Shown here in pieces: positions 4,852-61,518 of a stretch of DNA of 64,000 nt (positions are counted from its first letter, which is position 1; each line of letters starts with the position of its first letter). The translations under genes and the position numbers were made by a program. Source of the stretch: Marsupella aquatica (Eukaryota > Plantae > Marchantiophyta); NCBI GenBank assembly GCA_973895155.1, contig OZ316898.1:11183187-11247186 (forward strand), in the 5' to 3' direction. The notes below the pieces were generated by a model, which made no database searches, was not told where the DNA came from, and saw nothing but the letters and a program-made list of their open reading frames with translations.

Positions 4852-7120
4852 TCATGATGATAGAGATGCTGCAAATGCCTGTATGAATTGGTTGATTAGT
4901 GTTGGATAACAGCTCTATTCGTACAGGTCCCTTCCTAACCTTGTCCACAACGAGTGCTCATGCTTATTTAACAGCCAGATACTTGCTTCATATCATCATC
5001 CAAGTTGAAAAGCAAAGACCGAGTGCCATCACTTCAAAACCAATTATCCTAACATATACCTGGCATGTGTTAATTGGTTTTGTACACTCACTTCTTGAGC
5101 TTGCCTTGAACACCCGACAAATGCTTGAACAAGCTTTGAGCAGAGTAATGGGTTCTGCATCTCCCAGCAACCACCCACAGCTCAGATGATAAATTGCAAA
5201 AGACATTTTTTTTGCGTCAATGTAGGGTCATGGGGAATTTCATTGCTGATGTGGTTCCCAGAAGTCAAATCACAGTGCAGTAATCGTAACGAACCTTCTG
5301 GTTTTCTTTATAGCACTCTACACAGTTAGCCCGCTCATTTGAACAGGGTGGAGCATGGGAAGGAGCTCTGTGAAGAACAGACAAATAAAGACTTGTTAGA
5401 GTGATACATAAGTACCATATTCCGCAGTTGAAAGCTTTCATTGGTGAGGGAAGTAAGGATAATGGTAAACATATATGCCATACTTTCAGCCGAATTAATA
5501 TAGGAAGGAAAAAGAGGAACCCCCGCGGGGGATATTATTGGCAACATTTCCAACATACTAAGAAAACTCTTTAATTAACCAATAAGTGTACCTATATTGC
5601 TTTTCTTGAAGCTCTCGAGCCATTTCTTGCACCTTTGCAAGCTCACGATCTCCTTGTTTCTGAAGTCTTTGAGCAAGTTGCTTCTAAAAATTCAAACATC
5701 ACTAGGTCAGATCTTTGACCACGACATGCAATTCTTAGCTCCATATTCATTACAGAAATCAGTGAACAGACACGTAACACAATGCAGTGTTGATCCATAG
5801 CAGATATATTGCGAGATCATCATTGTCCTTGACCAGTAAGCTGAAAAATGATCTCCTTCTCTTTGTAGGCTCTACCGTCAGCAGTAAAGCGTACACACAA
5901 GCAAATTAATAGAAACGAAGACGATATCTAAATGGGCCAATCATACTCGGAGCGTTGAAACTAATTTATAAGGAACCTCAATGCTGAATACGGGGGTGAT
6001 AAACTCACACTTTCGTCAATTGCCTGATAAACAGGGGCCAGCTCCTTCTTGAGATCAGCTACAGGCGGTTCTACACTAAGTGGAGTACCAAAAATACCAC
6101 CAAAGGGAGGAAAGTAGGGGTCCCGTGCTGGCCATCCTCCTGCTGATGGTCCATGCTGGACATCTGGTTCATGCCATTCAACGGTCTTCTCTTGAGGCAC
6201 AGGAGAGATTGAAGAGAACGGTCTTGGCTTTGCCTTTGCCTGTCTTCTCCTTTTAGGTCTCTTTTCTCCTTGCTCTACCAGTCTTTGCATGAGCTCAGGT
6301 GTCACCTGTAGAATCAGACTGTTAGCCCGCTCGTCCAGAGAAAGCATGATAGCAGAGGAAGAGAAGGGAATTAGAACAATATGCCGTAAATTGTGAATTT
6401 CTGATGTAACACCCATGTAGATGGTCTGCAAACTGAAGAGGTAGATTGAAGTCAGGAACACTGTCTTTACGAGTTATTCAAAAGAAGATTCCATCAGCAT
6501 TTAACAACGTGATCATAAGCGATATGCGTTTCTGGCAAATTCCAAACGAGCAACAACACACTGAAGAACCACAAAACCAGCACCTAACAAGAGAAGCTTC
6601 ACGAGCGTCTGCCATGGCCAATAACAAACAGCGCTCACAACACGACCTAATCTCATAGTAGACTCGGACGACCAGAATTGGAGGCATGACAGCTCAGGAA
6701 TCTCTTCGGAGAAATCTTGACAAAGTATTATATTATGAAGCTCCCAATATTGTTCACTGATAAGTTTTAGCATGAAGAGGTAGCTTGCTTTCCATCTCGA
6801 TTCAATACAATCCTTGAGGAATGGAGGACAATTCAGATACCTCGGGGCCTGCCACCCTCGTCACCCTTTCCTATGCTTAGGAAAGACCTGTGCGAGATAA
6901 ATTAAGTTCACGATCACCAATCTATCTTCCCAACTTCACTATCAGTAGCGACCACCTCACAACTCCTTCCCTAGCAGTCCTGAGGCCAAGCGTGTAAATC
7001 TGCCAACAGGACGGATCGTCGATTTCGAACGAACTATGAGCTCTCTTCCATTCCATGCATTTACTACTAAAGAGCACGACATTCGGAAAGATATACCTGC
7101 AACGCGAACGAATTGCTCAT
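4852..7120 (-). CDS. Twin CX9C (CHCH) coiled-coil protein, Mic19/CHCHD3-like mitochondrial intermembrane-space protein, ~191 aa; 6 exons: 7120-7097, 6305-6009, 5683-5592, 5367-5295, 5154-5092, 4878-4852
   Basis: Phase-consistent GT-AG splicing yields MSNSFALQ|VTPELMQRLVEQGEKRPKRRR...AIDES|KQLAQRLQKQGDRELAKVQEMARELQEKQYR|APSHAPPCSNERANCVECYKENQK|NPLLCSKLVQAFVGCSRQAQE|AFAASLSS*. A coiled coil is followed by C-x9-C...C-x9-C. The last exon is the least certain. Confidence 0.8.
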
Positions 7121-10790: not shown

Positions 10791-12820
10791 ATGGTACAGT
10801 GGTTTGACTGCCATCCTCTTTTATCATTTCCTCTTTCTCAAATGTGTTTTGAATGAGTTTTAGGGTTCCTTTCGCGGCTGTGTAGTGTCGTGGATAGGAA
10901 TTTGCCCCTCGTGTCTCTAAGTGTCGGTATGGGGAGAGTGGTCTGTAAGGTTTACTGCGGTCTCAGAATTCTATCCTTCCCGATGCTTGTTCTGTGCGAA
11001 ATTGGACTCGGACCTTCCGATCTTTTGATACTTCAGAGCTTCTCCGATCTGTTGAACTCACATTCTCTAAAAGCTGCTACGTGCTCTATGCTAGATTTTC
11101 AGTTCTGAAAAAGCAGCATGAGCCTGCCCTCATGGGATTGATTTGGCCTTTCTAGGTGTGGACCGTGCTTGTGTTTAATTGTAGTGCAGAACTCTCGGTG
11201 CCTTCTTGCATCCTTTCTGGTTGAGTCACCCGGGCAATCTTTCTATAGCTTGCGAGGTCTTTTCGTCGCCTGGTTCTGTAAATTCAAGCTCCTGTTTATG
11301 GACTTGATCTGGTTGGAAGGAATGGGGTGGGACTAAAATGGAAATCATCCTTTAGGGTGTTTAGGGGCTTAGGCCAATCAACGTGATGTCCGCTTACATT
11401 TGAGAGCATGTCCTCCGGTTGCTTTAGATGCTGATCGAATTGTCTGCACGATTATTTGGGCCTTTGCTTCTTGGGATCTCAGCTCAAGCAAGTGATTGCC
11501 TTGTCTTTGGTTGGATTGACACTTTTGTCATTGGTCGGAATCGTACTCTCTCTGTCTCTCTCATTTCTCAGGGTCACCAATTGATGTTATGAAGATATTG
11601 TGCTGTGGCATTTGCTCACCCATGATGCTTTGTCTGAGCAGATTCGATTCATCTTACTACAAAATCGACAAGGGAAAACGAGATTAGCGAAGTATTACAT
11701 CCCTTTGGAAGATTCCGAGAAACACAAGCTTGAATATGAGGTGAGTACTTGCTGCAGAGATATATCGCAGATTGGCCTCAATCACCTCGCATTTGAATAA
11801 TTTTGCTGTTGCGGAACCTCCTAACCCTCGTCTCCGGGAACGTCCTGGGAACTCCAACGGACAGAAGCTACACTGAGTGACAAGAGTTTGTGCTTACTGT
11901 AGATTTGGCAGCTGTGCTGGAAATGACTCGCTATTTTTCATTGTAGGTCCACAGACTGGTGGTGAATAGAGATCCAAAGTTCACCAACTTTGTGGAGGTA
12001 CGTTAGTGTTAATCATTATGTTGCTCATTCACGGCATTGTAGGAATTTGAAAAACGGTCATCGTAATCTCCCTTTGCAAACGTTGCCGTATAACAATTTG
12101 CCGATCTTTTTACTTTATTTTCGAGGAGCCATTGCGTATCGTATTGTTTCACAGCTCAAATGTGCTTCTAAGTTAGTTCTCAGTGGACTCGTGTGCGCAG
12201 TTTCGAACACATAAGGTCATATATCGGCGCTATGCAGGCCTCTTTTTCTCTATGTGTGTGGACATCACTGACAATGAGCTGGCCTACCTTGAAAGCATCC
12301 ATCTCTTTGTAGAAATCTTGGATCATTTCTTCAGCAATGTTTGTGAGCTGGACTTGGTTTTCAATTTTCACAAGGTAAGCACTTTGCTGAGGATTTACTG
12401 TTTATGCAGGTTGTCTTTCTACACCAGTTAACATTGTATGTCGGAATTTCCTTGTTCATAAATTACTTAAATATGTTCAATATACTGAGATGACCAGCTG
12501 ATCTTTCCAGGACATAAGACGTTTCCGGACTCGTATAGCATGACGAATCTCATTTCGCTTTTGCTTTCTTCTCAGGTGTATTTGATATTGGATGAATTCA
12601 TTTTGGCTGGTGAATTGCAAGAAACGAGTAAGAAGGTATGAACGCGTGATCTGTTTCGGTGACATCTGTTCACTGGTTACATCATTGTGTAAGCCTCCAG
12701 GGTATCGGTCATATGTACTGTCGATAGTTGGAGGAGGCAGCGTATTATGGCGGTCCACTTAACATTGCGGTTTCAAATGTGCAGGCAATCATTGAACGAA
12801 TGAATGAGTTGGAGCTGTGA
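10791..12820 (+). CDS. AP2S: AP-2 clathrin adaptor complex sigma subunit (AP17), 140 aa; 6 exons: 10791-10793, 11642-11740, 11947-11997, 12201-12374, 12576-12635, 12785-12820
   Basis: Spliced product M|[33 protein letters not shown]|[17 protein letters not shown]|[58 protein letters not shown]|[20 protein letters not shown]|[11 protein letters not shown] is recognisably plant sigma2-adaptin. The start is assigned to ccaagATG|gtacag. Confidence 0.95.
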
Positions 12821-14804
12821 TTGTGTAGCCTGAGTTGATCAGCACGATGTGCCGCCCCTTCTCCAAACTCATTTTGGACAGGAAGGAGAGGTTCGATATT
12901 GTTTCAGCACACTCAAGGGCACAACTGTAGCTCGACTTAGTGTATCATTTTTTAGAGGTCATTATATATTTCATGGTCACGCCAATTTACTTTCTATTCA
13001 TTGATGATCTCACAATGCATTCTGTAGGGATTGGTTAGCATAAGCTTTCTGTACATGTAGGTCACAAGGAAGAAGGGAGCTTCTGGGTGCTTCACCGTTA
13101 TTATCATGCAAACGGTATCGATGTAGAGATATCAATTTAGTGATTCTCTGCGTCGAGGGCTCCATATTATCGGAGAGATTGTGTAGGATTATTCACAAGC
13201 AGTGAGGAATAGGCATCAATAGCCTTCCTTCTGTCTTGTTTGTGTTCAGGTACCTGGTTGGCAGTAAATGAGAACTTGGGAGAGTTGGGCGGCATGAGTT
13301 TCGGGGTTAGAGTGAACTTTTGTATGACCTCGTTACTGTCCTATATCCCTCAAATAGGTATTCTACCAGTTACTACACAACGCGCATATCATTTGAGTGC
13401 TCTATTTTCTTCATTCTATTTCGGGGTCTGCCTTGGAAGAAGCGTTTTGACTCATTGTGCATTTGATACCAAAAGAAAATGTTATTGAAGATTGGAAGAG
13501 TGTCCGCAATGCTGAACTAGGTCAGGGAGGGTTTCTAAGGGCCCAAGAGTGGCCAGTGGTCTTATTTTGTAACAAACCATTTTAGGGTATTCCGCTGCAG
13601 TATAATTGAGTAGCAATCAATTTGAGCCTTTAAACTCTTTTGTCGACGATAAATATACTCAAAAGGGTGACACTCGCTGAAAGTTGTGTCGTAGAGAGAA
13701 CATAAAGCCATCGCTGAGATAATAGCTTGAGATCGCAGTCTTGATACTTTTTTGTGTGGAACTACCTAAGCCAGTATGAGGATCCACGAACGGCGTTCAT
13801 GGCTGAGTTGGTTCTAGGACAAATACGTATGTTCAGTACTGCAGTGAGAAGGTGCTTCTTTGTCGGGACATTTGTTTCAAACGTACGGGAAAATTGACGA
13901 GTTTTCAGAGGTGTTTTTGTTCTGCGGAAAAATGGGGTAGTGGAAGGCGTGTAAATTAAATGAAAAAGGATCATGCTGTCAAATTCTATATGACAGGGAA
14001 GTATTTCACCACTTTCCCGGCACACGACCATGGTCTTGGAGTCAAGATTGTATAGACTCACGATGCCATCAGTACTGTAGGTTGCGCACTTCTTGCTCTA
14101 ACGATCTCAGATCTAAATGTGCCGGATAACGTCATATAAGCTCCAACCATTCAATATGAATCTCATGTCTGCGATTGGCAAGCTATGAGATCCAATCAGA
14201 TGGTCATAGACTCGTGACTGTATGTCAGAGTGTGTTACTGACCCTCCCATAAACAACCTTACTCATAGATCCAACTGTCACTCACGGCTATGTGTATGGT
14301 TTCTCTGATGTTCAATCGAGATCGTGAGTCCACACGACGAATGATCCAAAGTCACACTAAAAATGACATTACAGCGAAGACGCACTATGTAACAAAAACA
14401 CAAGCACAACAAATCATGGTCGTCACATACAGTTTGCGACCTTGGGATCATAGTAGGACAACCCACAACCCGTTCCTCATCTCCGTAGGTTCTTGGAAAG
14501 CCATTCCCCATAGTAAGTGCAAGATTCAAGAATTTTTATGGGGCGAACTTTTTGACATGATCTTGACCGGATCTTGGTCATGTAGCATCATCCCAATACT
14601 GACGAGGCCCTCATCATTCTGCACGTAAAAATCGAAGACAAGATTCGGTCACACACGAGCTGTGCGTGAGTATGTTTGTTACCCTCCATCTTTTCGTCCC
14701 GTGGTGCGTTGCACTGTAACCAATGGCGCCATTGAACACGTTGTGCCAGACGATGCAATGGAATAATCAGTAAATGCCCTCTCTCTCGCGGAAGGGGAGA
14801 ATAA

Positions 14805-17800
14805 ATGATGGCTTCGTTTGTTTATGAGTCTCTGGCCTTCCATAGCTTGGCATCAACTGCCAAATGGGAAAGCAGAAGGGAGGGATCCTTGGCTCAGGTA
14901 CGAGATCGTCGACGGCCTTTGAGCTCCAGACAGACTCAAGTGAAGGGAATAGTGAGGTGCGGGGTAGCTGAGAAGGATGGGGGACGAAAGGTGATCGTCA
15001 TTGGCGCTGGAGTGGGGGGATTGGCGGTCGGGGGAAAGTTGGCGTACGAGGGTTTCGATGTGCAGATTCTGGAGAAGAATGCAGAGGCTGGCGGTCGGTT
15101 GCAGTCTCTCTATGCTGAATTGGGAGAGCAGGAGACCTTCCGTTTCGATACTGGCCCAAGTCTGCTACTACTTCCTCAAAAATACCGAGACGCATTCACT
15201 GCTATGGGTACGAAGCCTTGCAACTTTCAGTGCTTTGAGAGTTTCAACGCCGATTCTCCCGAGCCATGGTATGGGATTGTTGATGTGGGGTAGTGGATCT
15301 CGTGTGACACTGACAGGTGAGAAGCTGGAGGACTACGTTGAACTCGAAAAGGTGGATCCCGTTGCATATAGAGTGTTCTTTGGCGAGGAGGAAGTCCCAC
15401 ATCACTTGGACTTGATGTACGATGTTCAGAAGATGTGTGCTCAACTGGAAAAGGTCGAAAAGGGCGCCGCTGCAAACTTTCTGCGCTTTCTTTCCAACGC
15501 GAAAGAAGCCCTTGACAAGGTCTTCCTCTCTGTTTCTCTGCTCCTATTGGCTGGCTAACTTTTCAGATGTGAATGTGATTTCAGGTAAGTCCCTTTTGAA
15601 ACTAGGTTAGTTAGATTCATTTCTTCCTGTAGTATCCAAGGAGCGTTCTATGCTCCCAACTTACGTACAAAGTCTGTAGAAGTATCACGATATTTAAAGC
15701 TGAGGATCCTGAAAGCTACGGAAATGCCATGGTCTACATCATGGCTTTATACGTAAGGATGTTAGGACCTTAATGAGAACAGGTCTTTTTGCACTCCTGA
15801 TTTATATGCTCCAATAAACGTTTCAGAAATTTTTATAGATCCGCAGTGTAATCTGTAAATGAAAAGCGACTTGCGTCCTTTTGAATCGCTTAAAAGTGGC
15901 AGTTGTGTAGAACGGTCCCTGTCCGCTGATTCGTTTTTTGTCGTAGTGATACGTTAGTTTCCGAATAGTGGAATCGCTACGACATGAAACTACCTCCGAT
16001 TCTCCCTGGACAATCTCCGCTGGTTTGTTTGCACCAAAGTAAATGCAATTCTTCTGAAACTGTTCCGTAAGTGAGTACGTCAGGGGATGTGGCAGCAATC
16101 ACAACCAAGATCAGCACATCTTCTTAGAGGCAATTACGCAGAGGGGATTATCAAAGGTTTTAATGAATTCAGGCAGAAACCTATCATTGAGTGGTTATTG
16201 TGGCTCGTTTTTCCCGTTTGTTTTATCCAGCTTGCTTTAGCGCTTTCACCTCCGTCCATGTGCTGTGGAAGGGCTTTTCTGAAAAGTGTTTATTGTCATG
16301 GCTAGTGTTTCCCTGGCTAACCCCTATTGTTGCTTACTCTTGGCAGGGAACAGAGAGCTTTATTGAGCGCGACTTTCGCACTTTTTGGGATTACGCTAAT
16401 ATCCCTCGTTTGTTACCCCTCCTCAAGCATCTCTCCCCTTTTGAACTCCTAGGACAGCATCATGCGCGCATGAAGAATTACTTCTCAAATCCCAAGCTTC
16501 AGGCTTTGTTTACCTTCCAAGTGAGTTTTGTGAATGACTTGATTTCCTTCAAGAAACCTATTGTTTAGATATTTGTATCCTCTGTGCTTCATTATTGATG
16601 TAGAGATCTCGGGAAATGCACGTACGAACTTGTAATCACTAGCATGTTTCTCTCTGGGCACATGTGGTGGTTTCCTCGCCAGGAGACAGCCAATAGCCTC
16701 TAAACCTCGAATGTTGAGCTCTAGATAGTTCCCTATCTCCACATACTTCAGGATCTTTTCACTCCGACTGATGACTCAATCAGAGAGCACTGTATGCAAA
16801 CGGATACAATGTTCTACACGGAGGCACAGCAAAGTTTTTTTATGGTGAACAATTGAGACACGGTGTCACGATTGAGGACAATTTTGGTGCATATGTTTGG
16901 ACTTCTATTACTGAGTTCAATATTACGGTATTACTTAGTGTGTTTAAATTTGCCTTCAGCTAATCATCGGGTGGATGGGTCCTTACGTAGGATTTGTACG
17001 TAGGTCTCACTCCGTACAATGCCCCCGGGGTTTTCAGCTTGCTGGCCGCGACAGAACTTACAGATGGCGTTTGGTATCCACTAGGAGGATTCGGGAAGGT
17101 GAGGGATGCTTTGGTACAAGCAGCCCAAAAGGCCGGAGCGAAAATACAAACCAAAACATCTGTAAAGAGGATTGAGCACATGAACGGCAAGGTAACGTTG
17201 TAGAGTCACTTTTCGATATTTGTTCTGAGCACATTGATTGAGATGCAATTGTTCCTGGACGTAGAAACTGCCGATCAGATGTTATGTTCCGTTGTCCTGG
17301 GTAGAAACTGCTTAAATAAGGATTTTATCACATTTTTTAATGGTTGAGAATATGGCTGATCTCAGCATGTGTAACAACCGGGAGTCGTACCATGGAGCCA
17401 GTGTTTCACGTTTCTTTGGATGTCAACAAAGTAGTCCAGGAGTCGACGTTGAAGAATCGCTTGTTTAATGATTGTGACAATAAGAGGTCTTGGAAGCCAG
17501 CCAGTTTGCTGTCTGAACGGAGAACTGATCGGTTCAAACAGAAATCAGAACGTAAATTAACTTGAATATTGTCTACAGGTAGTTGGTGTGACTCTTGAGG
17601 ATGGGAGCAATTTACGTGCGGATATCGTTGTGGCCAATGCTGATTTGCCATATGTCTACAACCAATTACTTAGCTCTGTAGGTGTGGGGCCATGATAATA
17701 CCCTGATCAGTTTATTTTATTTTATTGATTTTTAAGTGATATCTAGTGTTCAAAGGGTAAGAGGCGGCCTAAGGAGTATTGTTGGTCAGAGGCCACTCAG

Positions 17801-19453
17801 TCTTAATTCTTCTAGACGCTTTGAAGGTCTTATCTCTGGGATAAAGTCATTACCTGTCAATCATTGCAACAATGAATGAATCCAATTGATGTGAACGAGA
17901 GGTTTTGACAAAATTTCCTAGTTGGAGAGCAATCAAACAAATGTTTATAGATGATCTTCAGGACAGTGGCCCATGGAGGAGAAACGTTGGGAGAGGATAT
18001 ATCTCAGAAACGATAGACCCGACTGGGAAGTTGATCATCATCATGAATCCATCTCTTATCTTTAGCTTCTCTTTAAATGCAAATATTCTTGGAGCTAAGT
18101 TCTATTTCCATACACTGCAGTATAAGTGGCGGTCAGAATGTTGTGTGATTTTTCTTTACTCGTCTTCACGCGAAGTGTTGGTGTCCTTGCAAATCTATTT
18201 TGAGGGCACACTGGACTGGGCAAAATATCCATGTTGTAATCTGAAGCCCAATCATCAAGATTCGTAACTCTCCTCTGGCAGCCTGTCTGAACGATATTTC
18301 ATCACACTCTGTTTTAATTGTTTTTTATTTACCTTGATATTTGTGGAAACAGGGAACAAGCACGCAGAAAGACTAACACGATCAAAATACAGGTGACTCC
18401 TTATGAATTGTGTTTATCAGATCAGCTAGTCTAGGTCCAACTGCATTAGTTTCATTCAACTCTATTTGCGTTCTCTTCGTATGGTTGGAGTTCCCGAAAG
18501 AATTTGGAATTACACTCTCTTACAAGGAGGCTGATTTATTGCTGTGTGTGTAACAGTGCCAGTGTAATCTCTTTCAACTGGTCCCTGGATTGCCATCTGG
18601 GCGGGTTGAAGCACCATAACATATTCCTCTCTGAATCATATGAGAGAAGTTGGGATCGAGCAACTGACATGTCTACATTGTTGGACCAACCCAACTTTTA
18701 TTTGCATGCCCCTTCTCGGACTGATCCCAGTGTCTGCCCGAATGGTAATTCAGAAAACGATTGATTGAGTGTGTGCTGTCTAACTAAATGGCCGGACACC
18801 ATTTCATCAAGAGCTTTCTCATCATGGATTTGGATTCCTCGGATAAAGACTTCTCGTAGCCTGTCGCTGAACCTGAGTTGAACGGTAATTCTTAAAAGAG
18901 GCTAGAGTTTGAATTTTTGTTTGCTGCGGTCCCCTCTTTTGGTTCAGCCCGTAGCCCCAAAGGTTTGGTCTTTGTGATTGTTCAGGTTGAATTGTTTCGC
19001 ATCAGACTTATGATCCAATAGTAACTTAGCACCCTTTGCGCAGGTACTGATGCCATAACAGTGCTCCTTCCTGTTGCTCACTTTGGTGAAGGCTACAACG
19101 AACGCTATGCCGATGATGACAAGGCTATAGTAGACACTGCCAGGGAAAAAGTATTTGACAGGTTAAAGAGATCTGGCATTGGAGATATCTCTCCACATGT
19201 TCTTTCAGAGGTAGTGTATTCTCCGCCAATCTGGAGGGATTCTTACAACCTTCAACATGGGGCAACATTTGGTCTCTCTCATAATCTTCTACAGCTAGCT
19301 TATTTTCGTCCAGATGTTGCTGATTACTCAATTAAAGGGTTGTATTTTGCTGGGGCTTCTACTAGACCTGGCAATGGAGTCCCACTTGTGCTAATGGGGG
19401 CAAAACTAACCAGCAACAGAATTTTGGAAGATTGTAGGAAACTAACGATTTAG
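14805..19453 (+). CDS. crtI: CrtI-type (bacterial/fungal family) FAD-dependent phytoene desaturase-like protein with N-terminal transit-peptide-like extension, ~573 aa; 8 exons: 14805-15207, 15317-15519, 16347-16520, 16991-17191, 17579-17681, 18353-18392, 18557-18744, 19044-19453
   Basis: Exons sum to 1722 nt in one frame. Motifs in CrtI order: VIVIGAGVGGL, LEKNAEAGGR, RFDTGPSLLLLP, FTFQDLYVGLTPYNAPGVFSLL..ELTDGVWYPLGGF, DIVVANADL, HHNIFLS, FYLHAPSRTDPS, YNLQHGATFGLSHNLLQLAYFRP, GLYFAGASTRPGNGVPLVLMGAKL. Confidence 0.88.
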
Positions 19454-21994
19454 TTTATCTCCTATTCTTTGGCCTGTTAGGGTACTCTACGGGCTAGTGG
19501 ATTCTCCTTTATTGGAGGCTTTATGGACTCCCTGTTACTCATGATTTCTGTATGATCACTTGTACTGTTCCAGTGGCAATGAGGATGGCCTGTCGCAGGT
19601 CGTACTGTGGGCATGTTGTTGAGCTTTTAAGTGTTCAGCGTCTATGCCAGCAGCAAACTGCCTACCGTAAAGCGTTAGTCTATCCAGAGTAAATCCGTGC
19701 CTTCCTGCAATGAAAGAGAATGTGCAGACTTCTTTAGTTTCGATCCGAACACTGTACTCCTACAAGACTAACTTTAGACAATATTGTAGAGGAGCCCTTC
19801 GTGATTAAGCTTGAATTCTTCCCCCGTTCAGGTCATAGGAGCAACGTAAGTGCAGACCCGATAAATTTGCATGTTCTTATGCAGTGTCTTGAGCCGCGGC
19901 AGGGTGAAGATATTGGGAGAACGGGCATGAATGACAAAGAGTAGAGGCAAGATGGGTGACTATTTGTGATCGAGTCAGACGGTTCCTCATACTATCAAAT
20001 TCACTCTCTACCTCGTGATCAGAATGGAACAGGGCAGTGTTGGTATCCAGGACATACCAGGACTTATCCTCACCGTCAGCTCAGAGACACACGAGTTAGA
20101 GATAGTTGGGGCCATTCACCCCGGTCGAGGTATTCATTTACCGATTCTTGACCTACCTAGCACAATATAGAGCAATGACTAATTGCTCCTGTAAAACACC
20201 AAAATATCTGAGACGGAGCGTTTGTACCTTGTCATATACCCACGGAAGTACACAAAGGTATGCACAAACAAGTCGTCTCAGTTTGAGCCAGGTACGGTCT
20301 GCTTACCTCCCCATCCATGGCCTTCTCAGCAGTCTGAAATACAAAATCATCAGGCTTATTTCGTGAAAAACTCGCGGCGATGGGTTTCACGAGCTCAATA
20401 TAATAAGTGGAATAAGTAAATGAGCTCTCCACAAACCATGACAATTTGAGAGCCTGTGGCTGGATTATTAGGATATGTCTCATCAGCATTGGGCTTATAT
20501 CAATTAGTAAATTTGCTTTTCTTTTGAACTCTAGTTAATGTCATGATAAGTAAAGCAGGATTATTCTGTCCTCCAAGTATAGCGGCACTCATTAGCGTCA
20601 GATTCATATCCACGGTTCTGAATAATTGCTTTCTAGTCTACTACTAGACAATTGATATCCCCTGGTGTCCGACACAGAACGAATCCATCTCTTGAAGACC
20701 TTTTGCTTTTTGCTAGTCCCGTCCAAAGGAATAGGAATTGGAGTTCGTTTAATTGTCGTAACTGATGATAATATAACCTATCGTCCACGCTGGAAGGAAG
20801 CGGAATTCTAAAGACTTTATGGTATTTCCGTTCAATCGAGAAAGAATCGAAAGTTAAAAACGAATTGGAGGTGTTCTTATTGTAACTCATGACATTTCAT
20901 TCCATCTTTGGATGCAAGGAAGGAAGCTGTGTCTTGAAGACCTCATGCTAGTCCCGGTCCATCGGAACAAGTTGCAGATTTTCTAAGTGTGGCTCCTGGC
21001 GGTTTAGATATTCCATCTGTCGCAATAGAACAAGACCTTTTAAGAAATGTTTTTTGTTGGCAAGAAAGAAGCTTTAGATGTTTATTGACATTCATCCCTA
21101 GTAATAATAAGAGAGACACAGAGACAAGACCTAGGTCAATACATTGCAGGTAGAGTCAAAAGAAGTAGAGATCATCTCTTCTTCAACATCGACGAATAAC
21201 AAAAGGTAAGAACCATAAAGAACCGAAATAGTCGGTAAACTGTCAATAGAATATCTTCTAGAAAGGCCAGTGTGAAACTTTTGGGCATACTGACAGATTG
21301 CAGCCGAACCAAAAATGTTGGATGGTTGGTGGAGTCCATGCGCGATCATGTACCCATGAAAAGCATGTGAAGTAGGGGAAAAGCTACGAATGGAGGTGCT
21401 CCTGCGATGGGCTCATCCATGCATTTGAAACCAAAGGATCGTCCATCCCTGTAGCTGAGCCGGATCCCCTTAAAATAACAAGAAAAAAACCTCATCCCGC
21501 TGCTCCATCTTAGATTTCCAGAATATCTTTCAACGCAATAAACAATGACAGCAAACTCTAAGGCTCTTGGATCAAGGCATGACGTTGTCTCCACCAAACA
21601 CGCGTCTGATCCCAGCTACAGTGTTAAGCAAAACTACCCAACTAAGACCAACTCGAAGTATGAGGCCAAATCGAGAGCCTCAGATCGCCAATGTACTGCA
21701 GGCCACTATCAATTTCTTCTGTCATTGTCTGAGTGAGAGAAACCCATCTCCTTGTCACAACGGTACTCGTGATTAGACTCAGGAAAGGAGCGGAGCTGTT
21801 GATTAGTGTGGATGACGGACGGGCCGAAAGGATAACCATCTCCTTGTGCATGATGTGACGCGACGACTTAAAATATGATAAAGAGTGATTCGCAGACGAC
21901 TCCGCCACTTCAGACAGCTTCTGTCCCTTGCACAATCAAGTAAGCTGTGCTTAAAACTAAGGAGAAATATGTGAGTAGATTAAGCCACCACTAC

Positions 21995-48982: not shown

Positions 48983-50023
48983 ATGAGTGATTCGGAGGAA
49001 TTTTTCGAAGACATGGAACTTGAAGCACGAGGATCACCGCGGCGGTTTCAGGGGCAGAGAGAGGAGCAGGAGGAAGAGCACGTGACACCGATACCATCAC
49101 CGGTGCGGCGTGTGGTGGAGGAAGCAGTACTACTACCGGAGCTCACGGTAGTGCCAAAGAAGAAGATGGGGACTTTCAAGCTTGGGGGACCCAAGTATGA
49201 AGTGACAAAGTATGATGGGCGCTCTGACTACTTGCTATGGGAGAAGCAGGTGAAGGGAGTGCTCTATGCGTCAGGGATGGGCCAACTGCTGAGCCCTCGT
49301 GAAGACGATGTTGATGAGAAACAATGGGACCGCATGCAGGAGCAGGGAGTGTGGTGTGTTACACTCTATCTCATGCCTCCCATCATCAAGCAGTTGGGTG
49401 CACATAAGGATTGCATGTCCTTGTTTGCGGAATTGCAGAGCAAGTATCACCGCAAGGAGTTGTCGAACCGGCTCTACACTTCCTACAAACTCATGAGTTT
49501 CAGGATGAAGGAATCCGGTACAAAGTTGCAAGACCATGTGGATGCTTTCAACGACATGGTCGTTGACTTGGAAAACCTTGGGGAGACTTTGAATGATGAG
49601 ACGAAAGCTCTGCAGCTTCTTAGTTCATTGCCTCCATCTTACCAGTCCCTATCACGAGTGTTGTTGCATCGTGATAGGGATACCATTTCATATAATGACG
49701 TGGTAAGTTCTCTGCTTAGTGATGATCTTCAGCAGAAGATGCACATCACATCACAGCCTTCATCATCTGGTGCTGCCCTCAATGTTAACCGTGGGAGGGG
49801 TATGCAGCGACCAACTGGGGACCGTAGAACCCAGTTTAGATCTAAATCCAGATCTAAGTCCAAGAGTAAATCCCCTCAGAGGAGGCAGGTGACATGTTGG
49901 AAGTGCAACCAAGTTGGACACTTCAAGCGAGACTGTAAGGGAAAGGCAGCGGAAACTTCATCGGCAAATGTGGCTAGGGCTGATGGAGAAGCTGATTTAC
50001 TCAATGATGAGTATGTTTTATGA
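48983..50023 (+). CDS. gag: Copia Gag, 346 aa
   Basis: KYDGRSDYLLWEKQVKGVL, the copia gag core LLSSLPPSY, and a CCHC knuckle CWKCNQVGHFKRDC. Confidence 0.92.
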   Translation: MSDSEEFFEDMELEARGSPRRFQGQREEQEEEHVTPIPSPVRRVVEEAVLLPELTVVPKKKMGTFKLGGPKYEVTKYDGRSDYLLWEKQVKGVLYASGMGQLLSPREDDVDEKQWDRMQEQGVWCVTLYLMPPIIKQLGAHKDCMSLFAELQSKYHRKELSNRLYTSYKLMSFRMKESGTKLQDHVDAFNDMVVDLENLGETLNDETKALQLLSSLPPSYQSLSRVLLHRDRDTISYNDVVSSLLSDDLQQKMHITSQPSSSGAALNVNRGRGMQRPTGDRRTQFRSKSRSKSKSKSPQRRQVTCWKCNQVGHFKRDCKGKAAETSSANVARADGEADLLNDEYVL

Positions 50024-52369
50024 AGCCGGGGGTATGCCCTATGCACGTCATCTAGGAGAGCAGATGATGTGTGGATTCTTGATTGTGCTTGCTCTTTTCA
50101 TATTTGTTACATTCGTGAGTTTTTCAGTTCTTACTCTATTTCAAACGGTTTAGTTCTGATGGGAAATGATCACTCCTGTCAAATTGAGGGAATTGGGTCT
50201 GTGAAGATTCAAATGTTTGATGGCGCTGTGCGCACAGTGTCCGGAGTCAGGTATGTACCTGGCATGCGTAAGAATCTGATTTCACTCGGTGTGTTGGATT
50301 CAAATGGTCATCATTGGAGCGTTATTGATGGTGAACTTCAAGTCAGGTTGGGAGAGACAGTGATTTTGAAGGGGAGTAGACAAAAGAATTTGTATGTGTT
50401 ACAGGGCAATACTGTATGTGGAGAGGCCAATGTAACCAAGTCTCACGAGGAGATGACTCAACTGTGGCATTCACGGCTAGGCCACATGAGTAAGAAGGGT
50501 TTGGCTATCTTACGGAAGAATGGACTCATTTCTGATTTGCAATCTTGTAAATTAGAGTTTTGTGAGCATTGCATTCTTGGAAAGCAGCATCGTCGTGCTT
50601 TTGGTGTTGGAACTCATCGTTCCAAAGCGGTTCTTGAGTACATACATAGTGACGTGTGGGGTCCATCCTCGACTCCCTCACACTCTGGAAAGTTGTACTA
50701 TGTATCATTTATTGATGATTACTCAAGATTTGTGTGGATTTATTTCATGACGCATAAGTCTGATGTCTTGTCCATTTTTAAGAAGTGGAAGGCCCAGGTG
50801 GAGAATCAGACTGGAAACACGATCAAGTGTTTGGATACAAGGGTGAAGAGTCCGAGGTCAGACAACGGCGGGGAGTACACTTCAATGGAATTTGAAGAGT
50901 ACTGTTTAGAACAGGGGATAACTCGCCATCTCACCACAGTTTATACTCCACAGCAGAATGGTGTCGCTGAGAGGCTCAATCGGACACTGTTGGAGCGGTC
51001 ACGGAGTATGTTGAGCCAATCAGGTTTACCACAAGAATTTTGGGCAGAAGCTGTCAATACCGCAGCTTATTTGGTAAATATTTCTCCTTCTAGTGCTATC
51101 AATTTCAAAACGCCGTTTGAGATGCGCTATAAGCGGCAAGCAGACTATCATGGCTTGGTAGTTTTTGGAAGTGATGCATATGCTCTCACACCGAAGCAGA
51201 ATAGGACCAAGTTGGATCCTACCTCCAAGAAATGTGTTTTTCTTGGGTACCAGAGTGGTGTGAAAGCCTATAGGCTATGGGATCCTATTGCCTGTAAGCT
51301 CGTTGTCAGTAGGGATGTTTCCTTCAATGAATCCAGATTATTGAAGGAGGGGGAGAATACTCAGGTCTCCCGTACTGACAAAGGAAAATCTCCTATCCCG
51401 GATCTCGTTGAGGGGGAGATTGGTTATGAGGTGCATGACCGGAGAGAAGGAGTTGCTCCAATTATGGAGCTGGTTCCTGTGCCAGAGGAACCAGAGGAGT
51501 TTGTTGATGCTGGTGAGCAGCAAGTGGATGCTGTTGAGCTTCAAATTGTACCAGCACACGCAGATCAACCGGAGTCATCGGCTAGAAGAACATATGGTCG
51601 CACTGTACGCGCTCCACCAAGGTATGGACAGTGGGTTGATTCATCTCAACTGCAAGAGGATGATTTTACAACTGATGATGAGGGTGATGCGTTAATTTTG
51701 GAAGAAGGGGAACCTTCTTCATTTCATGAGGCAAGTGCTTCAAAGGAGAAGCAGAAGTGGACTGCAGCAATGCAAACGGAGATGCAGTCACTAAAGGACA
51801 ACAAAACTTGGGAGCTTGTTAAGTTGCCTAAGGGTCAGCAAGTGGTGGACAGCAAGTGGATTTACAAGTTAAAGGATAATTCCATAGGAGGTGGATCGAA
51901 GGTCTACAAGGCTAGATTGGTAGCAAAGGGATTCACACAAGAGAAAGGTGTGGATTACAATGAGGTCTTCTCACCAGTTGCTAAGTACTCTACAATACGA
52001 CTATTGTGTGTACTTGTCGTAATGTTTGGTCTGCTGCTAGATCAGATGGATGTTGTCACAGCTTTCCTCTATGGCACATTGGAAGAGGTGATCTTCATGA
52101 GACAACCGCTAGGTTTTGTGAAGAGAGGACAGGAGGAATTGGTTTGCAGATTGCTAAAATCCTTGTATGGGTTGAAGCAGTCACCAAGACAGTGGAACAA
52201 GCGGTTTGACGATTGGATTCGGTCACAAGGTTTTCACAGAAGTGTATTTGACCCTTGTGTGTATTTGAAACCGGTAAAGAATGTTGTCTTTGGGTTCATT
52301 GTTTTAGTACTTTATGTGGATGATATGCTAATTGCAGCCTTTAGATTTAGGGAAGGTTGGTCATGTTAG
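50024..52369 (+). CDS. pol: Copia Pol (protease, integrase, partial reverse transcriptase); in frame with gag after one TGA; truncated
   Basis: WILDCACSFH (PR); LWHSRLGH..CEHC, IHSDVWG, RSDNGGEY, TPQQNGVAER (IN); YKARLVAKGF, QMDVVTAFL, LYGLKQSPRQW, YVDD (RT). Confidence 0.93.
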   Translation, partial: SRGYALCTSSRRADDVWILDCACSFHICYIREFFSSYSISNGLVLMGNDHSCQIEGIGSVKIQMFDGAVRTVSGVRYVPGMRKNLISLGVLDSNGHHWSVIDGELQVRLGETVILKGSRQKNLYVLQGNTVCGEANVTKSHEEMTQLWHSRLGHMSKKGLAILRKNGLISDLQSCKLEFCEHCILGKQHRRAFGVGTHRSKAVLEYIHSDVWGPSSTPSHSGKLYYVSFIDDYSRFVWIYFMTHKSDVLSIFKKWKAQVENQTGNTIKCLDTRVKSPRSDNGGEYTSMEFEEYCLEQGITRHLTTVYTPQQNGVAERLNRTLLERSRSMLSQSGLPQEFWAEAVNTAAYLVNISPSSAINFKTPFEMRYKRQADYHGLVVFGSDAYALTPKQNRTKLDPTSKKCVFLGYQSGVKAYRLWDPIACKLVVSRDVSFNESRLLKEGENTQVSRTDKGKSPIPDLVEGEIGYEVHDRREGVAPIMELVPVPEEPEEFVDAGEQQVDAVELQIVPAHADQPESSARRTYGRTVRAPPRYGQWVDSSQLQEDDFTTDDEGDALILEEGEPSSFHEASASKEKQKWTAAMQTEMQSLKDNKTWELVKLPKGQQVVDSKWIYKLKDNSIGGGSKVYKARLVAKGFTQEKGVDYNEVFSPVAKYSTIRLLCVLVVMFGLLLDQMDVVTAFLYGTLEEVIFMRQPLGFVKRGQEELVCRLLKSLYGLKQSPRQWNKRFDDWIRSQGFHRSVFDPCVYLKPVKNVVFGFIVLVLYVDDMLIAAFRFREGWSC

Positions 52370-59300: not shown

Positions 59301-61518
59301 CTGAATATGAATCAGGGCCACTCACCTAAAAATACATAAAGGTATCTATCTTATTTACATAGATCTTACCGTTATTTTCTATGTATATACTCATATAAAA
59401 GTATGACATAAATAATATAATTTATTTCAGCGTTGTAGCAGCTTATTTTAATTCCACCGCTTTACAAAATTTTAGTAAAAATAATATCAAAATATGTATT
59501 TTGGATAGCACATGTTGTCTATAGTTTTTTTAGTTAACCTAGGTGATGAAATGTGGGCCACTGGTATTAATTTTGATGCAAAGTGTATATCAGTCATTAT
59601 GCACTAGAGTAAGTTGGGAGGTGTGCACCAATCAACCTGTTTGCATTAATTTGAGAAAAACAACACAGAGGGTCCCAGGACAGCCCTTTCATCGCTTATC
59701 ATCATGATCTAGCACAAGAGTCTGTAGTCCACAGTCAAAGTAGACAGAGTTTCCAAATGTTTCAGCTGGGCCTTGCCATTAGAAGAAATGCAAAGTAATT
59801 ACTAGTAGGTCTCTCAAACCTCAAAATTTAAATTTTAGGGACATTAACTTAGTAGTTCCCCATATTAAAGCCCCATTCCCTCCGCCACTACTCCTCAATC
59901 TTCTCCTCTGGTGAATAGTGTCTCAGCATAAAAGGTGGAACACTTGCCAATAAAAGGTGTTGCAGTCATTACCTTTTGTGGAGCTCAAAGCCCATTCCTG
60001 AACCTGTCACTTTACAATGCAAATTACGGGTAACATATAGCTCTTAATAGCCAGGGCAATTGTGGTTTAAGGTTAGGGATAGCAAGAGTTATGGACTCCC
60101 CAATTCAGGATGCAAAATTACCTTTCACATAAGAGTAGTCATATGCCCTTATCACAAGTCCTTAGGGAGTCTCAAAGCTGGGTCATTTGTGAAAGTTATG
60201 GATTTATGGTATATCCCATAACTCCGGTTATGAGACCCAGTTATGGGATTTTAAAAATGGGGTCTGGAGGTAGCATTGACCAACCCATAAGCCAGGCCCG
60301 AAGGCAGGAGTTATGGACTCAATTGTCTCATAGCCTATATTCTTTTGACAAATCTGATCAAGAATCTAGGAAACAAGAATATCGTTTGCCGGGCGGCCAT
60401 AGCACTCATGCTTGTTCAACAACCATGTTTGGACTGTACAACACTATGGCCCCTTCCACCAGTTTTGCATCCTTGAGCCCTCACACTCACCTCCCCAACA
60501 ACAACACATCCACAACAACACTAACAAAAATGATAACAGTCCACCAAATCAACCACCCAACCAAATTGATGAAACATTTGCATCCACAATCATCATCTCC
60601 ACATCACAAAGTTGGAATAACAACTCATCTTTGTCCCACTTGCAATTCTTTACCTCAACTTTCTAATTTGTGCAATGCACGACCAGGTTGCATTCTACAA
60701 CCAACCATATGGTCACAAAGACAATCATCACTTGCAATTATTCTAATCATCTTGATCTATATTGTGCAGTGCACAGGTATTTGCACTAAGGATGACATGG
60801 AGGCAATGACATTCTTGCAATGCAGTGGCACTTGGCTAGTATCAATTTGGCATTATAATGTGCAGTAATGCCTTTTGCTCTAAGGGGCTGTTTGTTTACA
60901 TAAACCCAAAATGGCCGGAACATATAGTGGTTGTTTTCTGAAAACACTTTTGATCACTGTTGGATTGGGGAAAACACCTCCATTGCAACCCTGGCCCCAT
61001 CCACAGTTGGGTGTACCCTTCAGGAACAACTAAGTAAAGGACTTTGAAATGAATTCTATTGTATCTAATAGTATGAAAAACAAGGACTACAGGAAAGGAT
61101 TTTGTAAAAGAATCCTTTGATAATTTTGAATTTAAAAGTATAGCTAATGACCAAACCAACCGCAATCAAACCAAGTCAGAAATTAAAGATGAGTCTTATT
61201 TTGAATGGATGGTAAGGATTTGATATAGATATCAATCTATGATGGACGTTAAGTCAACTGCTACAGCAAGTTTCAAGTGTCCAAAAAACTTTGCAAGGAT
61301 CCAAAAGCTTTGATCACGAATATATCTTCTTGCACTTAATCTCAAATATATCTTCTTAAACAAAATCATCAACCCAAACATGCTCAAAGAACTTTCCTTG
61401 AAAACATTCATATTGTAACAAATTCAGGTGTGACACTCCTTTTGAGTCCTCCAATTGTGAATGAGCCCCCCTCCTTGCCTCAAAGTGTGCCATTTGCCTC
61501 ACCCTACGATGTGCTCGA

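Follow-up and report, generated by a model that had tools for sequence, protein, structure and literature searches.

The textbook carotenoid pathway of plants runs through PSY, PDS, Z-ISO, ZDS and CRTISO. Other reactions catalysed within the CrtI superfamily include 3,4-desaturation (CrtD, and the fifth step of AL-1), isomerisation (CRTISO and CrtH), ketolation (CrtO) and, for the diatom enzyme CRTISO5, hydration. For the CrtI of Pantoea, Schaub et al. proposed a catalytic role for D149 together with R148 or R152, in a pocket that also contains H322/H323, Y351 and H353 (PMC3382138). A 2025 review of algal carotenoids recorded a bacterial-type CrtI, among oxygenic phototrophs, only in Gloeobacter (PMC11857680). 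Here we describe a CrtI-family gene that lies on the forward strand, at positions 14805-19453, of a 64,000-nucleotide stretch of the liverwort Marsupella aquatica (contig OZ316898.1, positions 11,183,187 to 11,247,186), which is referred to below as the window. In contrast to the picture given in that review, the gene belongs to a conserved, intron-bearing and probably plastid-targeted family that extends over glaucophyte, red, green and secondary algae and liverworts.

An earlier sequence-only reading of this DNA had reported an intact open reading frame of eight exons and about 573 amino acids carrying the full series of CrtI motifs, and the gene model sustains that description to a degree well outside chance. 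The eight exons, with boundaries tested by script, join to a coding sequence of 1722 nt encoding 573 amino acids and a stop codon, and no internal stop occurs in the joined reading frame. All seven introns are bounded by GT..AG and range in length from 109 to 827 nt, the donor of exon 5 being placed after position 17681 because frame continuity demands that site. The motifs listed in that reading (RFDTGPSLL, YVGLTPYNAPG, GVWYPLGGF, FYLHAPSRTDPS, GATFGLSH and GASTRPGNGVP, the last at residues 541-551) are all found in the model, and the C-terminal FAD-contact signature GLYFAGASTRPGNGVPLVLMGAKL is almost invariant in 21 plant and algal orthologues.

In a 56-row alignment, residues D217, R223, H394/H395, Y423 and H425 of the window protein fall at the positions of Pantoea D149, R152, H322/H323, Y351 and H353, respectively, and these pocket residues are kept about as well as they are among accepted CrtIs. 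The position of Pantoea R148 is occupied by W216, and this position also varies among accepted CrtIs.

Searches with the window protein were made exon by exon, and the full-length profile and fold analyses were performed on the orthologue from Calypogeia fissa (P0171; 86.7% identical to the model, residues 1-573 against 1-570) as a stand-in, while the joined 573-residue model was used in local alignment, trees and dN/dS estimates. Seven exons were scanned against the NCBIfam profile TIGR02734 (crtI_fam), exon 6 with its 13 amino acids being too short, and six of these seven matched it colinearly with a sum of about 305 bits, relative to a curated cutoff of 238.1, with no match for exon 3. The C. 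fissa protein scored 403.9 bits over profile positions 1-492. Pfam detected a Rossmann fold and Amino_oxidase in the window exons and, when solved structures were searched by sequence, exon 8 matched solely the Pantoea CrtI (4dgk) and the Nonlabens CrtD (4rep), with 4rep also the best match of exon 1. An AlphaFold2 model of the C. fissa protein (pTM 0.82) is disordered over residues 1-55, where pLDDT falls below 35; Foldseek placed 4REP (E 1e-39) and 4DGK (E 2e-31) at the top, revealing the three-domain CrtI/CrtD fold, and family labels of "phytoene desaturase" recurred in the ESM Atlas.

Identity with other named members of the superfamily was rejected on the same data. The C. fissa protein reaches 82.2 bits on the CRTISO/CrtH profile TIGR02730 (cutoff 586.9), single exons of the window giving at most 22 bits; on the CrtD profiles it scores 238 bits for NF045637 (cutoff 580) and 225 for NF042421 (cutoff 500), and a third CrtD profile, TIGR02733 (cutoff 550 bits), was not listed for it at a threshold of 1e-10. 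It falls far short of CrtO (70 bits against a cutoff of 1000), scores for HpnE are negligible for both the exons and the C. fissa protein, and the rice plant PDS appeared at rank 45 of the fold search with 12% identity. The assignment to the CrtI family rather than to CRTISO, which had been made from the sequence alone, is therefore upheld by the profiles. Judged by these profiles and the maximum likelihood tree described below, the window protein is a member of the CrtI family, in a branch tied to carotenoid or isoprenoid synthesis, and is an orthologue of no characterised enzyme.

The profile scores also bear on whether the enzyme may catalyse a different carotenoid reaction, such as 3,4-desaturation, cis-trans isomerisation, ketolation or hydration. 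By structure, the model of the C. fissa protein comes closest to the CrtD 4REP (target-normalised TM 0.89), and the CrtI superfamily has changed its reaction type repeatedly, both of which would favour such a change here. However, the CrtD, CRTISO and CrtO models all remain far under their cutoffs, and the closest relatives whose fusions or gene neighbours are informative resemble phytoene desaturases, such that we regard a different carotenoid reaction as rather unlikely, although an observation on herbicide sensitivity considered below would suit it.

The genomic setting is that of a resident nuclear gene. Positions and phases of all seven introns are identical in the window and in the annotated genes of C. 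fissa and Marchantia polymorpha, and two of the seven positions are held in common with a 14-exon gene of Klebsormidium. Upstream in the window lies a gene for an AP-complex sigma subunit, with Pfam Clat_adaptor_s matches of 90.5 bits at 12177-12428 and 30.9 bits at 11585-11797, as expected from the ordinary plant AP2S neighbour that had been reported earlier. Window positions 10843-13372 align, at 76% DNA identity, with the Clat_adaptor_s gene of C. fissa, downstream of which the orthologue lies on a contig of 24 Mb. The adjacency is kept in the same orientation in C. fissa and inverted in M. polymorpha, and the AP-sigma and CrtI-like pair thus constitutes a microsynteny that spans both main classes of liverworts. 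Introns have GC contents of 39-50%, the coding sequence 48% and the window 43%. Since the family is best known in bacteria and fungi, one might suspect contamination, or that this liverwort recently acquired the gene by horizontal transfer, but this is refuted by the seven spliceosomal introns at positions common to liverworts, by the synteny with AP-sigma in two other liverworts with assemblies at chromosome scale, by a GC content like that of the window, and by a gene tree that follows the plant and algal species tree, and we assign it a negligible probability. The earlier view of a nuclear, intron-bearing gene that is not bacterial contamination accords with the shared introns and the conserved neighbour.

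Full-length relatives were retrieved by an exhaustive HMMER search with exon 8, and the liverwort proteins by a word-indexed search with the protein of Spirogloea. Among the relatives found by HMMER, those of Spirogloea and Chlorokybus are most similar to the window model (57% identity), while the proteins of Marchantia and Riccia show 72% and 68% identity, respectively. With 86.7% for C. fissa, these values place the window in a leafy liverwort (Jungermanniopsida) near Calypogeia. When a liverwort query was compared with a set of 5.8 billion proteins, the only land-plant matches were from liverworts, followed by streptophyte and chlorophyte algae, and no moss, hornwort, lycophyte, fern or seed-plant orthologue was found in the protein searches, this set included. 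Spirogloea has three or more copies, grouped in a single cluster at 90%. A Spirogloea muscicola protein of 1056 amino acids (P0151) has about 510 extra N-terminal residues lacking a Pfam domain and may be a merged gene model; more generally, the long models of plant and algal orthologues, among them those of Spirogloea and Volvox (999 amino acids), contain no extra Pfam domain.

A careful maximum likelihood tree of 56 rows was constructed under LG+C20+F+G4, with supports given as ultrafast bootstrap/SH-aLRT, and a quick tree of 78 rows agrees with it. The window protein groups with that of Calypogeia (100/99) within the liverworts (100/100), which are joined by Spirogloea (98/88) and then by Mesotaenium (90/89). 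Viridiplantae are recovered at 100/99, their basal order being left without resolution, and are sister (98/91) to a clade of Porphyridium, Vitrella, Heterosigma, Phaeomonas and Chlorarachnion, with Cyanophora at the base of the whole plant and algal clade (100/98); Cyanophora and Porphyridium form long branches and their exact placement is less certain. The clade therefore spans a glaucophyte, red algae, stramenopiles, a chromerid, a chlorarachniophyte, chlorophytes, streptophyte algae and liverworts. From glaucophyte to liverwort, the branching of the gene tree matches that of the species; there is thus no sign of a transfer into land plants, and the gene is an old algal one that was inherited vertically. 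Of the two origins suggested earlier, inheritance from algae with loss in seed plants is thus favoured, and an ancient horizontal acquisition by land plants is not supported. The loss seems wider than had been suggested since, among land plants in the databases searched, liverworts alone retain the gene and it was apparently lost in the others sampled.

Together with two outside groups, the plant and algal sequences form a clade of 44 rows (100/99). The first outside group consists of a chytrid sequence, Rhinocladiella, Protostelium and an Anaerolineales sequence, and constitutes a branch separate from that of plants and algae; in Protostelium the protein has a lycopene cyclase domain fused to it, and in Rhinocladiella an SQS_PSY domain forms part of the gene model. 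No fusion or linkage to carotenoid genes was seen at the plant and algal loci and models examined. The second group comprises genes of Chloroflexota and Verrucomicrobia which, at 37-41% identity, are the nearest prokaryotic relatives found. At three bacterial loci the CrtI-like gene lies between IspH and a divergent SQS_PSY-family synthase with intact DxxxD motifs, which scores 64-74 bits on Pfam and gives weak HpnD/HpnC matches and no curated equivalog match. A profile search for a co-inherited partner, made with this synthase, yielded at least 120 matches, those listed being metagenomic or bacterial, and it is uninformative on eukaryotic orthologues.

The divergence of this synthase implies that its product may not be phytoene, and desaturation of a non-carotenoid isoprenoid, either a C30 squalene-type chain or a prenyl side chain, would also find a precedent in the C30 enzymes of the CrtN type, which belong to the same superfamily. 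We consider it improbable, given that fungal and amoebozoan members of the clade have a lycopene cyclase in fusion, or a phytoene synthase domain in the same gene model, that HpnE scores are negligible, and that a plastid location would place the enzyme close to phytoene and not to squalene.

Evidence for a plastid location comes from the N-terminal regions. Plant and algal orthologues carry variable, acidic-poor extensions of about 20-140 residues, whereas bacterial and fungal relatives have 3-7 residues ahead of the Rossmann fold. The window presequence, of about 58 amino acids, is basic, hydroxylated and fast-evolving (dN/dS 0.51), and the corresponding region is disordered in the model of the C. 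fissa protein. The transit-peptide-like extension noted earlier is thereby confirmed as a sequence feature that bacterial and fungal relatives lack. In complex plastids, proteins are expected to carry a signal-like segment followed by a transit-like region. The orthologues from Phaeomonas, Chlorarachnion and a Heterosigma-like alga show a hydrophobic signal-like segment and then a transit-like region, and in the two stramenopiles among them a Phe follows the hydrophobic segment.

Splicing was examined by comparing contigs from four sequencing runs with window positions 14700-19600. The stretch was present unchanged, in a single piece, in one of the runs, probably its source, and two runs of another organism (organism C) gave DNA-like contigs with the introns kept. 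The remaining run, X1, represents a relative with about 94-96% identity and a small share of the sampled words, and its label as RNA is a guess, none of the listed runs being on record as RNA. Contigs from X1 skip exactly 827, 387, 164 and 299 nt, the lengths of introns 2, 4, 6 and 7. At 17682 a contig has a loose end that continues with the start of exon 6, as predicted for removal of intron 5. A check of the junctions by RNA, as proposed in the sequence-only reading, has hence succeeded for five of the seven introns, with the proviso that the contigs come from a relative and are probably RNA, while introns 1 and 3 are without a junction. The seeming shift of 4 nt at intron 4 goes back to the change of a Val codon to Ile, which the relative and C. 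fissa apparently have in common. One X1 contig extends over the last 115 nt of intron 3 (window 16876-16990) as well as exon 4, other X1 contigs being spliced, and this could reflect intron retention, pre-mRNA or DNA in the run. In organism C, several contigs break off within exon 2, at window positions 15346-15421, and continue into unrelated sequence, and the summed contig depth of bin 15356-15519 is roughly twice as high as in adjacent bins; that genome may contain a duplicated fragment of exon 2 at another site.

Of the 22 coding-sequence differences listed for X1, 13 are synonymous. Relative to C. fissa, the Nei-Gojobori dN/dS is 0.18 over the full length, with 0.10 in the mature enzyme and 0.51 across the first 70 alignment columns, and in the comparison with Marchantia synonymous sites are saturated while the proteins are still 72% identical. 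These substitution patterns indicate purifying selection.

On balance, we lean towards the view that this functional nuclear gene encodes an auxiliary plastid carotene desaturase that operates beside PDS, Z-ISO, ZDS and CRTISO. According to this proposal, an FAD-dependent CrtI-family enzyme would be imported into the plastid and, like CrtI, reside at the membrane surface, where a long polyene or isoprenoid chain would enter a tunnel beside the flavin. Two hydrogens would be removed per cycle, with the electrons passing to O2 or a quinone, and the most likely substrate would be phytoene or a later acyclic carotene. The activity would be auxiliary, of low flux or condition-specific, and not a bulk bypass.

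Several considerations weigh against an auxiliary carotene desaturase. The classic four-step CrtIs, represented by sequences that annotated plasmids of Pantoea, Thermus and Sulfitobacter supplied, form their own clade (100/100) outside the 44-row clade and, therefore, function is not transferable from them by orthology. The catalytic role is a predicted one for every member of the clade, the plastid location is likely from sequence features alone, and the splicing data derive from a run whose RNA status is guessed and of which one contig retains the end of intron 3. Finally, spores of Marchantia, which has an orthologue, bleach and arrest on 5 µM norflurazon (PMC9545484), and green algae are killed by 0.5-2 µg/mL norflurazon, with Chlamydomonas gaining resistance only upon introduction of a CRTI transgene from bacteria (PMC6468381). 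Norflurazon selection of Haematococcus, which carries an orthologue (P0195), is cited in the latter paper. Norflurazon bleaches the orthologue carriers Marchantia and Haematococcus, and the enzyme therefore does not replace PDS under those conditions.

The same observations bear on the principal idea of the sequence-only reading, namely a full second route from phytoene to lycopene, insensitive to norflurazon and with substantial flux. Membership of the CrtI family, retention of the pocket residues and conservation across algae would all be compatible with it, but the bleaching of Marchantia spores, the death of green algae at low herbicide concentrations and the need for a bacterial transgene to confer resistance render it very improbable. 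The phenotype would also suit an enzyme acting downstream of PDS and, to that extent, accords with the different carotenoid reactions discussed above.

The enzyme, if active as a carotene desaturase or isomerase, would constitute an extra step-catalyst in a pathway regarded as complete and would be relevant to herbicide and pro-vitamin A engineering. It would also make a clear example of ancestral plastid metabolism that persists in liverworts and has apparently disappeared from the remaining land plants sampled. A broader proposition, which we consider possible but doubtful, is that since the ancestor of Archaeplastida photosynthetic eukaryotes have kept a plastid enzyme of this clade with a distinct, conserved reaction that is absent from the textbook pathway. 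Candidate reactions would be an O2-linked, plastoquinone-independent desaturation or isomerisation of carotenes when the plastoquinone pool cannot accept electrons, or action on an isoprenoid so far unrecognised. Marchantia allows a direct test and, were the reaction distinct, liverworts would be the sole land plants available for its genetic study.

The window gene is a new member of the known CrtI family, and the plant and algal clade is an unstudied branch of it. Sequences of the family are already public under automatic names, and transcriptome tables lump the gene with PDS. A literature search for a plant or algal CrtI-type enzyme returned automatic labels, reviews denying its existence and mentions of CRTISO, with no analysis of the family, and the Marchantia gene, Mp1g19580, was not mentioned in the literature searched.

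Coordinates of the gene, its neighbour and the bacterial loci are collected in the table. Elsewhere in the window, positions 48983-52369 on the forward strand carry a Copia-type LTR (long terminal repeat) retrotransposon, with an open reading frame of 346 amino acids for gag and a zinc knuckle followed by one of 766 amino acids containing a Pol beta-barrel domain, integrase and RVT_2. Two further open reading frames, at 60110-60868 on the forward strand (252 amino acids) and 5961-6461 on the reverse strand (166 amino acids), gave no Pfam match.

Table. Features of the CrtI-like gene and its neighbour in the window, and of related bacterial loci in metagenome-assembled genomes (MAGs).
Feature	Position	Strand	Characteristics
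AP-complex sigma subunit gene	11585-12817	+	exons visible at about 11640-11740, 12190-12390, 12580-12640 and 12780-12810
Exon 1	14805..15207	+	start codon, presequence and FAD-binding Rossmann fold, reaching RFDTGPSLL; TIGR02734 positions 1-67, 66.8 bits; Pfam NAD_binding_8
Presequence of about 58 residues, probable plastid transit peptide	14805..14978	+	basic, hydroxylated; IVRC at residues 49-52 of the N-terminal extension
GAGVGG dinucleotide-binding motif, residues 67-72	15003..15020	+	from sequence and Rossmann-domain matches
Exon 2	15317..15519	+	TIGR02734 positions 70-129; exon 2/3 junction in spliced X1 contig
Exon 3	16347..16520	+	D217 and R223, aligned to Pantoea CrtI D149 and R152; in spliced X1 contig; no TIGR02734 match
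Exon 4, YVGLTPYNAPG...GVWYPLGGF	16991..17191	+	TIGR02734 positions 185-248, 55.7 bits; exon 4/5 junction in X1
Exon 5	17579..17681	+	TIGR02734 positions 252-282; X1 contig stops at 17682, loose end matching start of exon 6
Exon 6, micro-exon of 40 nt (13 aa)	18353..18392	+	needed for reading frame; present in Calypogeia and Marchantia; exon 6/7 junction in X1
Exon 7, HH pair 394-395 and FYLHAPSRTDPS	18557..18744	+	TIGR02734 positions 314-365; exon 7/8 junction in X1
Exon 8 and stop codon, C-terminal third of enzyme	19044..19453	+	TIGR02734 positions 372-493, 102.5 bits; PDB sequence matches 4dgk (CrtI) and 4rep (CrtD)
C-terminal FAD-contact signature GLYFAGASTRPGNGVPLVLMGAKL, residues 536-559	19337..19408	+	aligns with Pantoea CrtI segment NLYLVGAGTHPGAGIPGVIGSAK
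3' UTR (untranslated region), at least to 19600	19454..19600	+	spliced X1 contig continues to end of examined stretch; differences from window denser than in exon 8
SQS_PSY-like / CrtI-like / IspH locus, Limnocylindria	L002 4985-8474		MAG
SQS_PSY-like / CrtI-like / IspH locus, Chloroflexia	L005 4958-8432		MAG
SQS_PSY-like / CrtI-like / IspH locus, Verrucomicrobia	L006 5006-8418		MAG

Among the described systems, the plastid enzymes of plants are similar in setting and distant in sequence. Rice PDS (5MOG) is likewise an FAD-dependent plastid carotene desaturase, but it is plastoquinone-dependent and inhibited by norflurazon, and its low identity and rank in the fold search set it apart. CRTISO and CrtH share the superfamily and fold with the window protein, and CRTISO is nuclear-encoded and plastid-targeted in plants; it occurs throughout land plants, however, whereas the window gene does not, and on its profile the C. 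fissa protein scores far below the cutoff.

The classic bacterial phytoene desaturase, the four-step CrtI of Pantoea ananatis (4DGK), shares TIGR02734, the fold, the N- and C-terminal FAD motifs and the equivalents of D149, R152, H322-H323, Y351 and H353. It differs in its identity of about 28%, in belonging to a separate, strongly supported clade, in lacking both presequence and introns, and in the location of its gene within a crtEXYIB cluster. Enzymes of the fungal AL-1/CarB type (chytrid and Rhinocladiella) and the cyclase-CrtI fusion of Protostelium are closer, in that they are eukaryotic, fall within the 44-row clade and, at the FDxGP(T/S)x motif, carry the same PSL variant as the window protein. 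They show 34-40% identity, occupy their own branch with the Anaerolineales sequence and lack a plastid presequence, and their genes are linked or fused to those for phytoene synthase or lycopene cyclase, unlike the plant and algal genes. The CrtI-like proteins of Chloroflexota (Limnocylindria) and Verrucomicrobia, at the level of identity given above, share the motifs QDLYVGLSP and RPGNGVPL, and are set apart as prokaryotic, uncharacterised proteins that lack a presequence and have a divergent synthase as neighbour. Mp1g19580 of Marchantia comes from the other class of liverworts and bears a database name assigned automatically; it is an orthologue that is 72% identical, has all its intron positions in common with the window gene and likewise lies beside AP-sigma.

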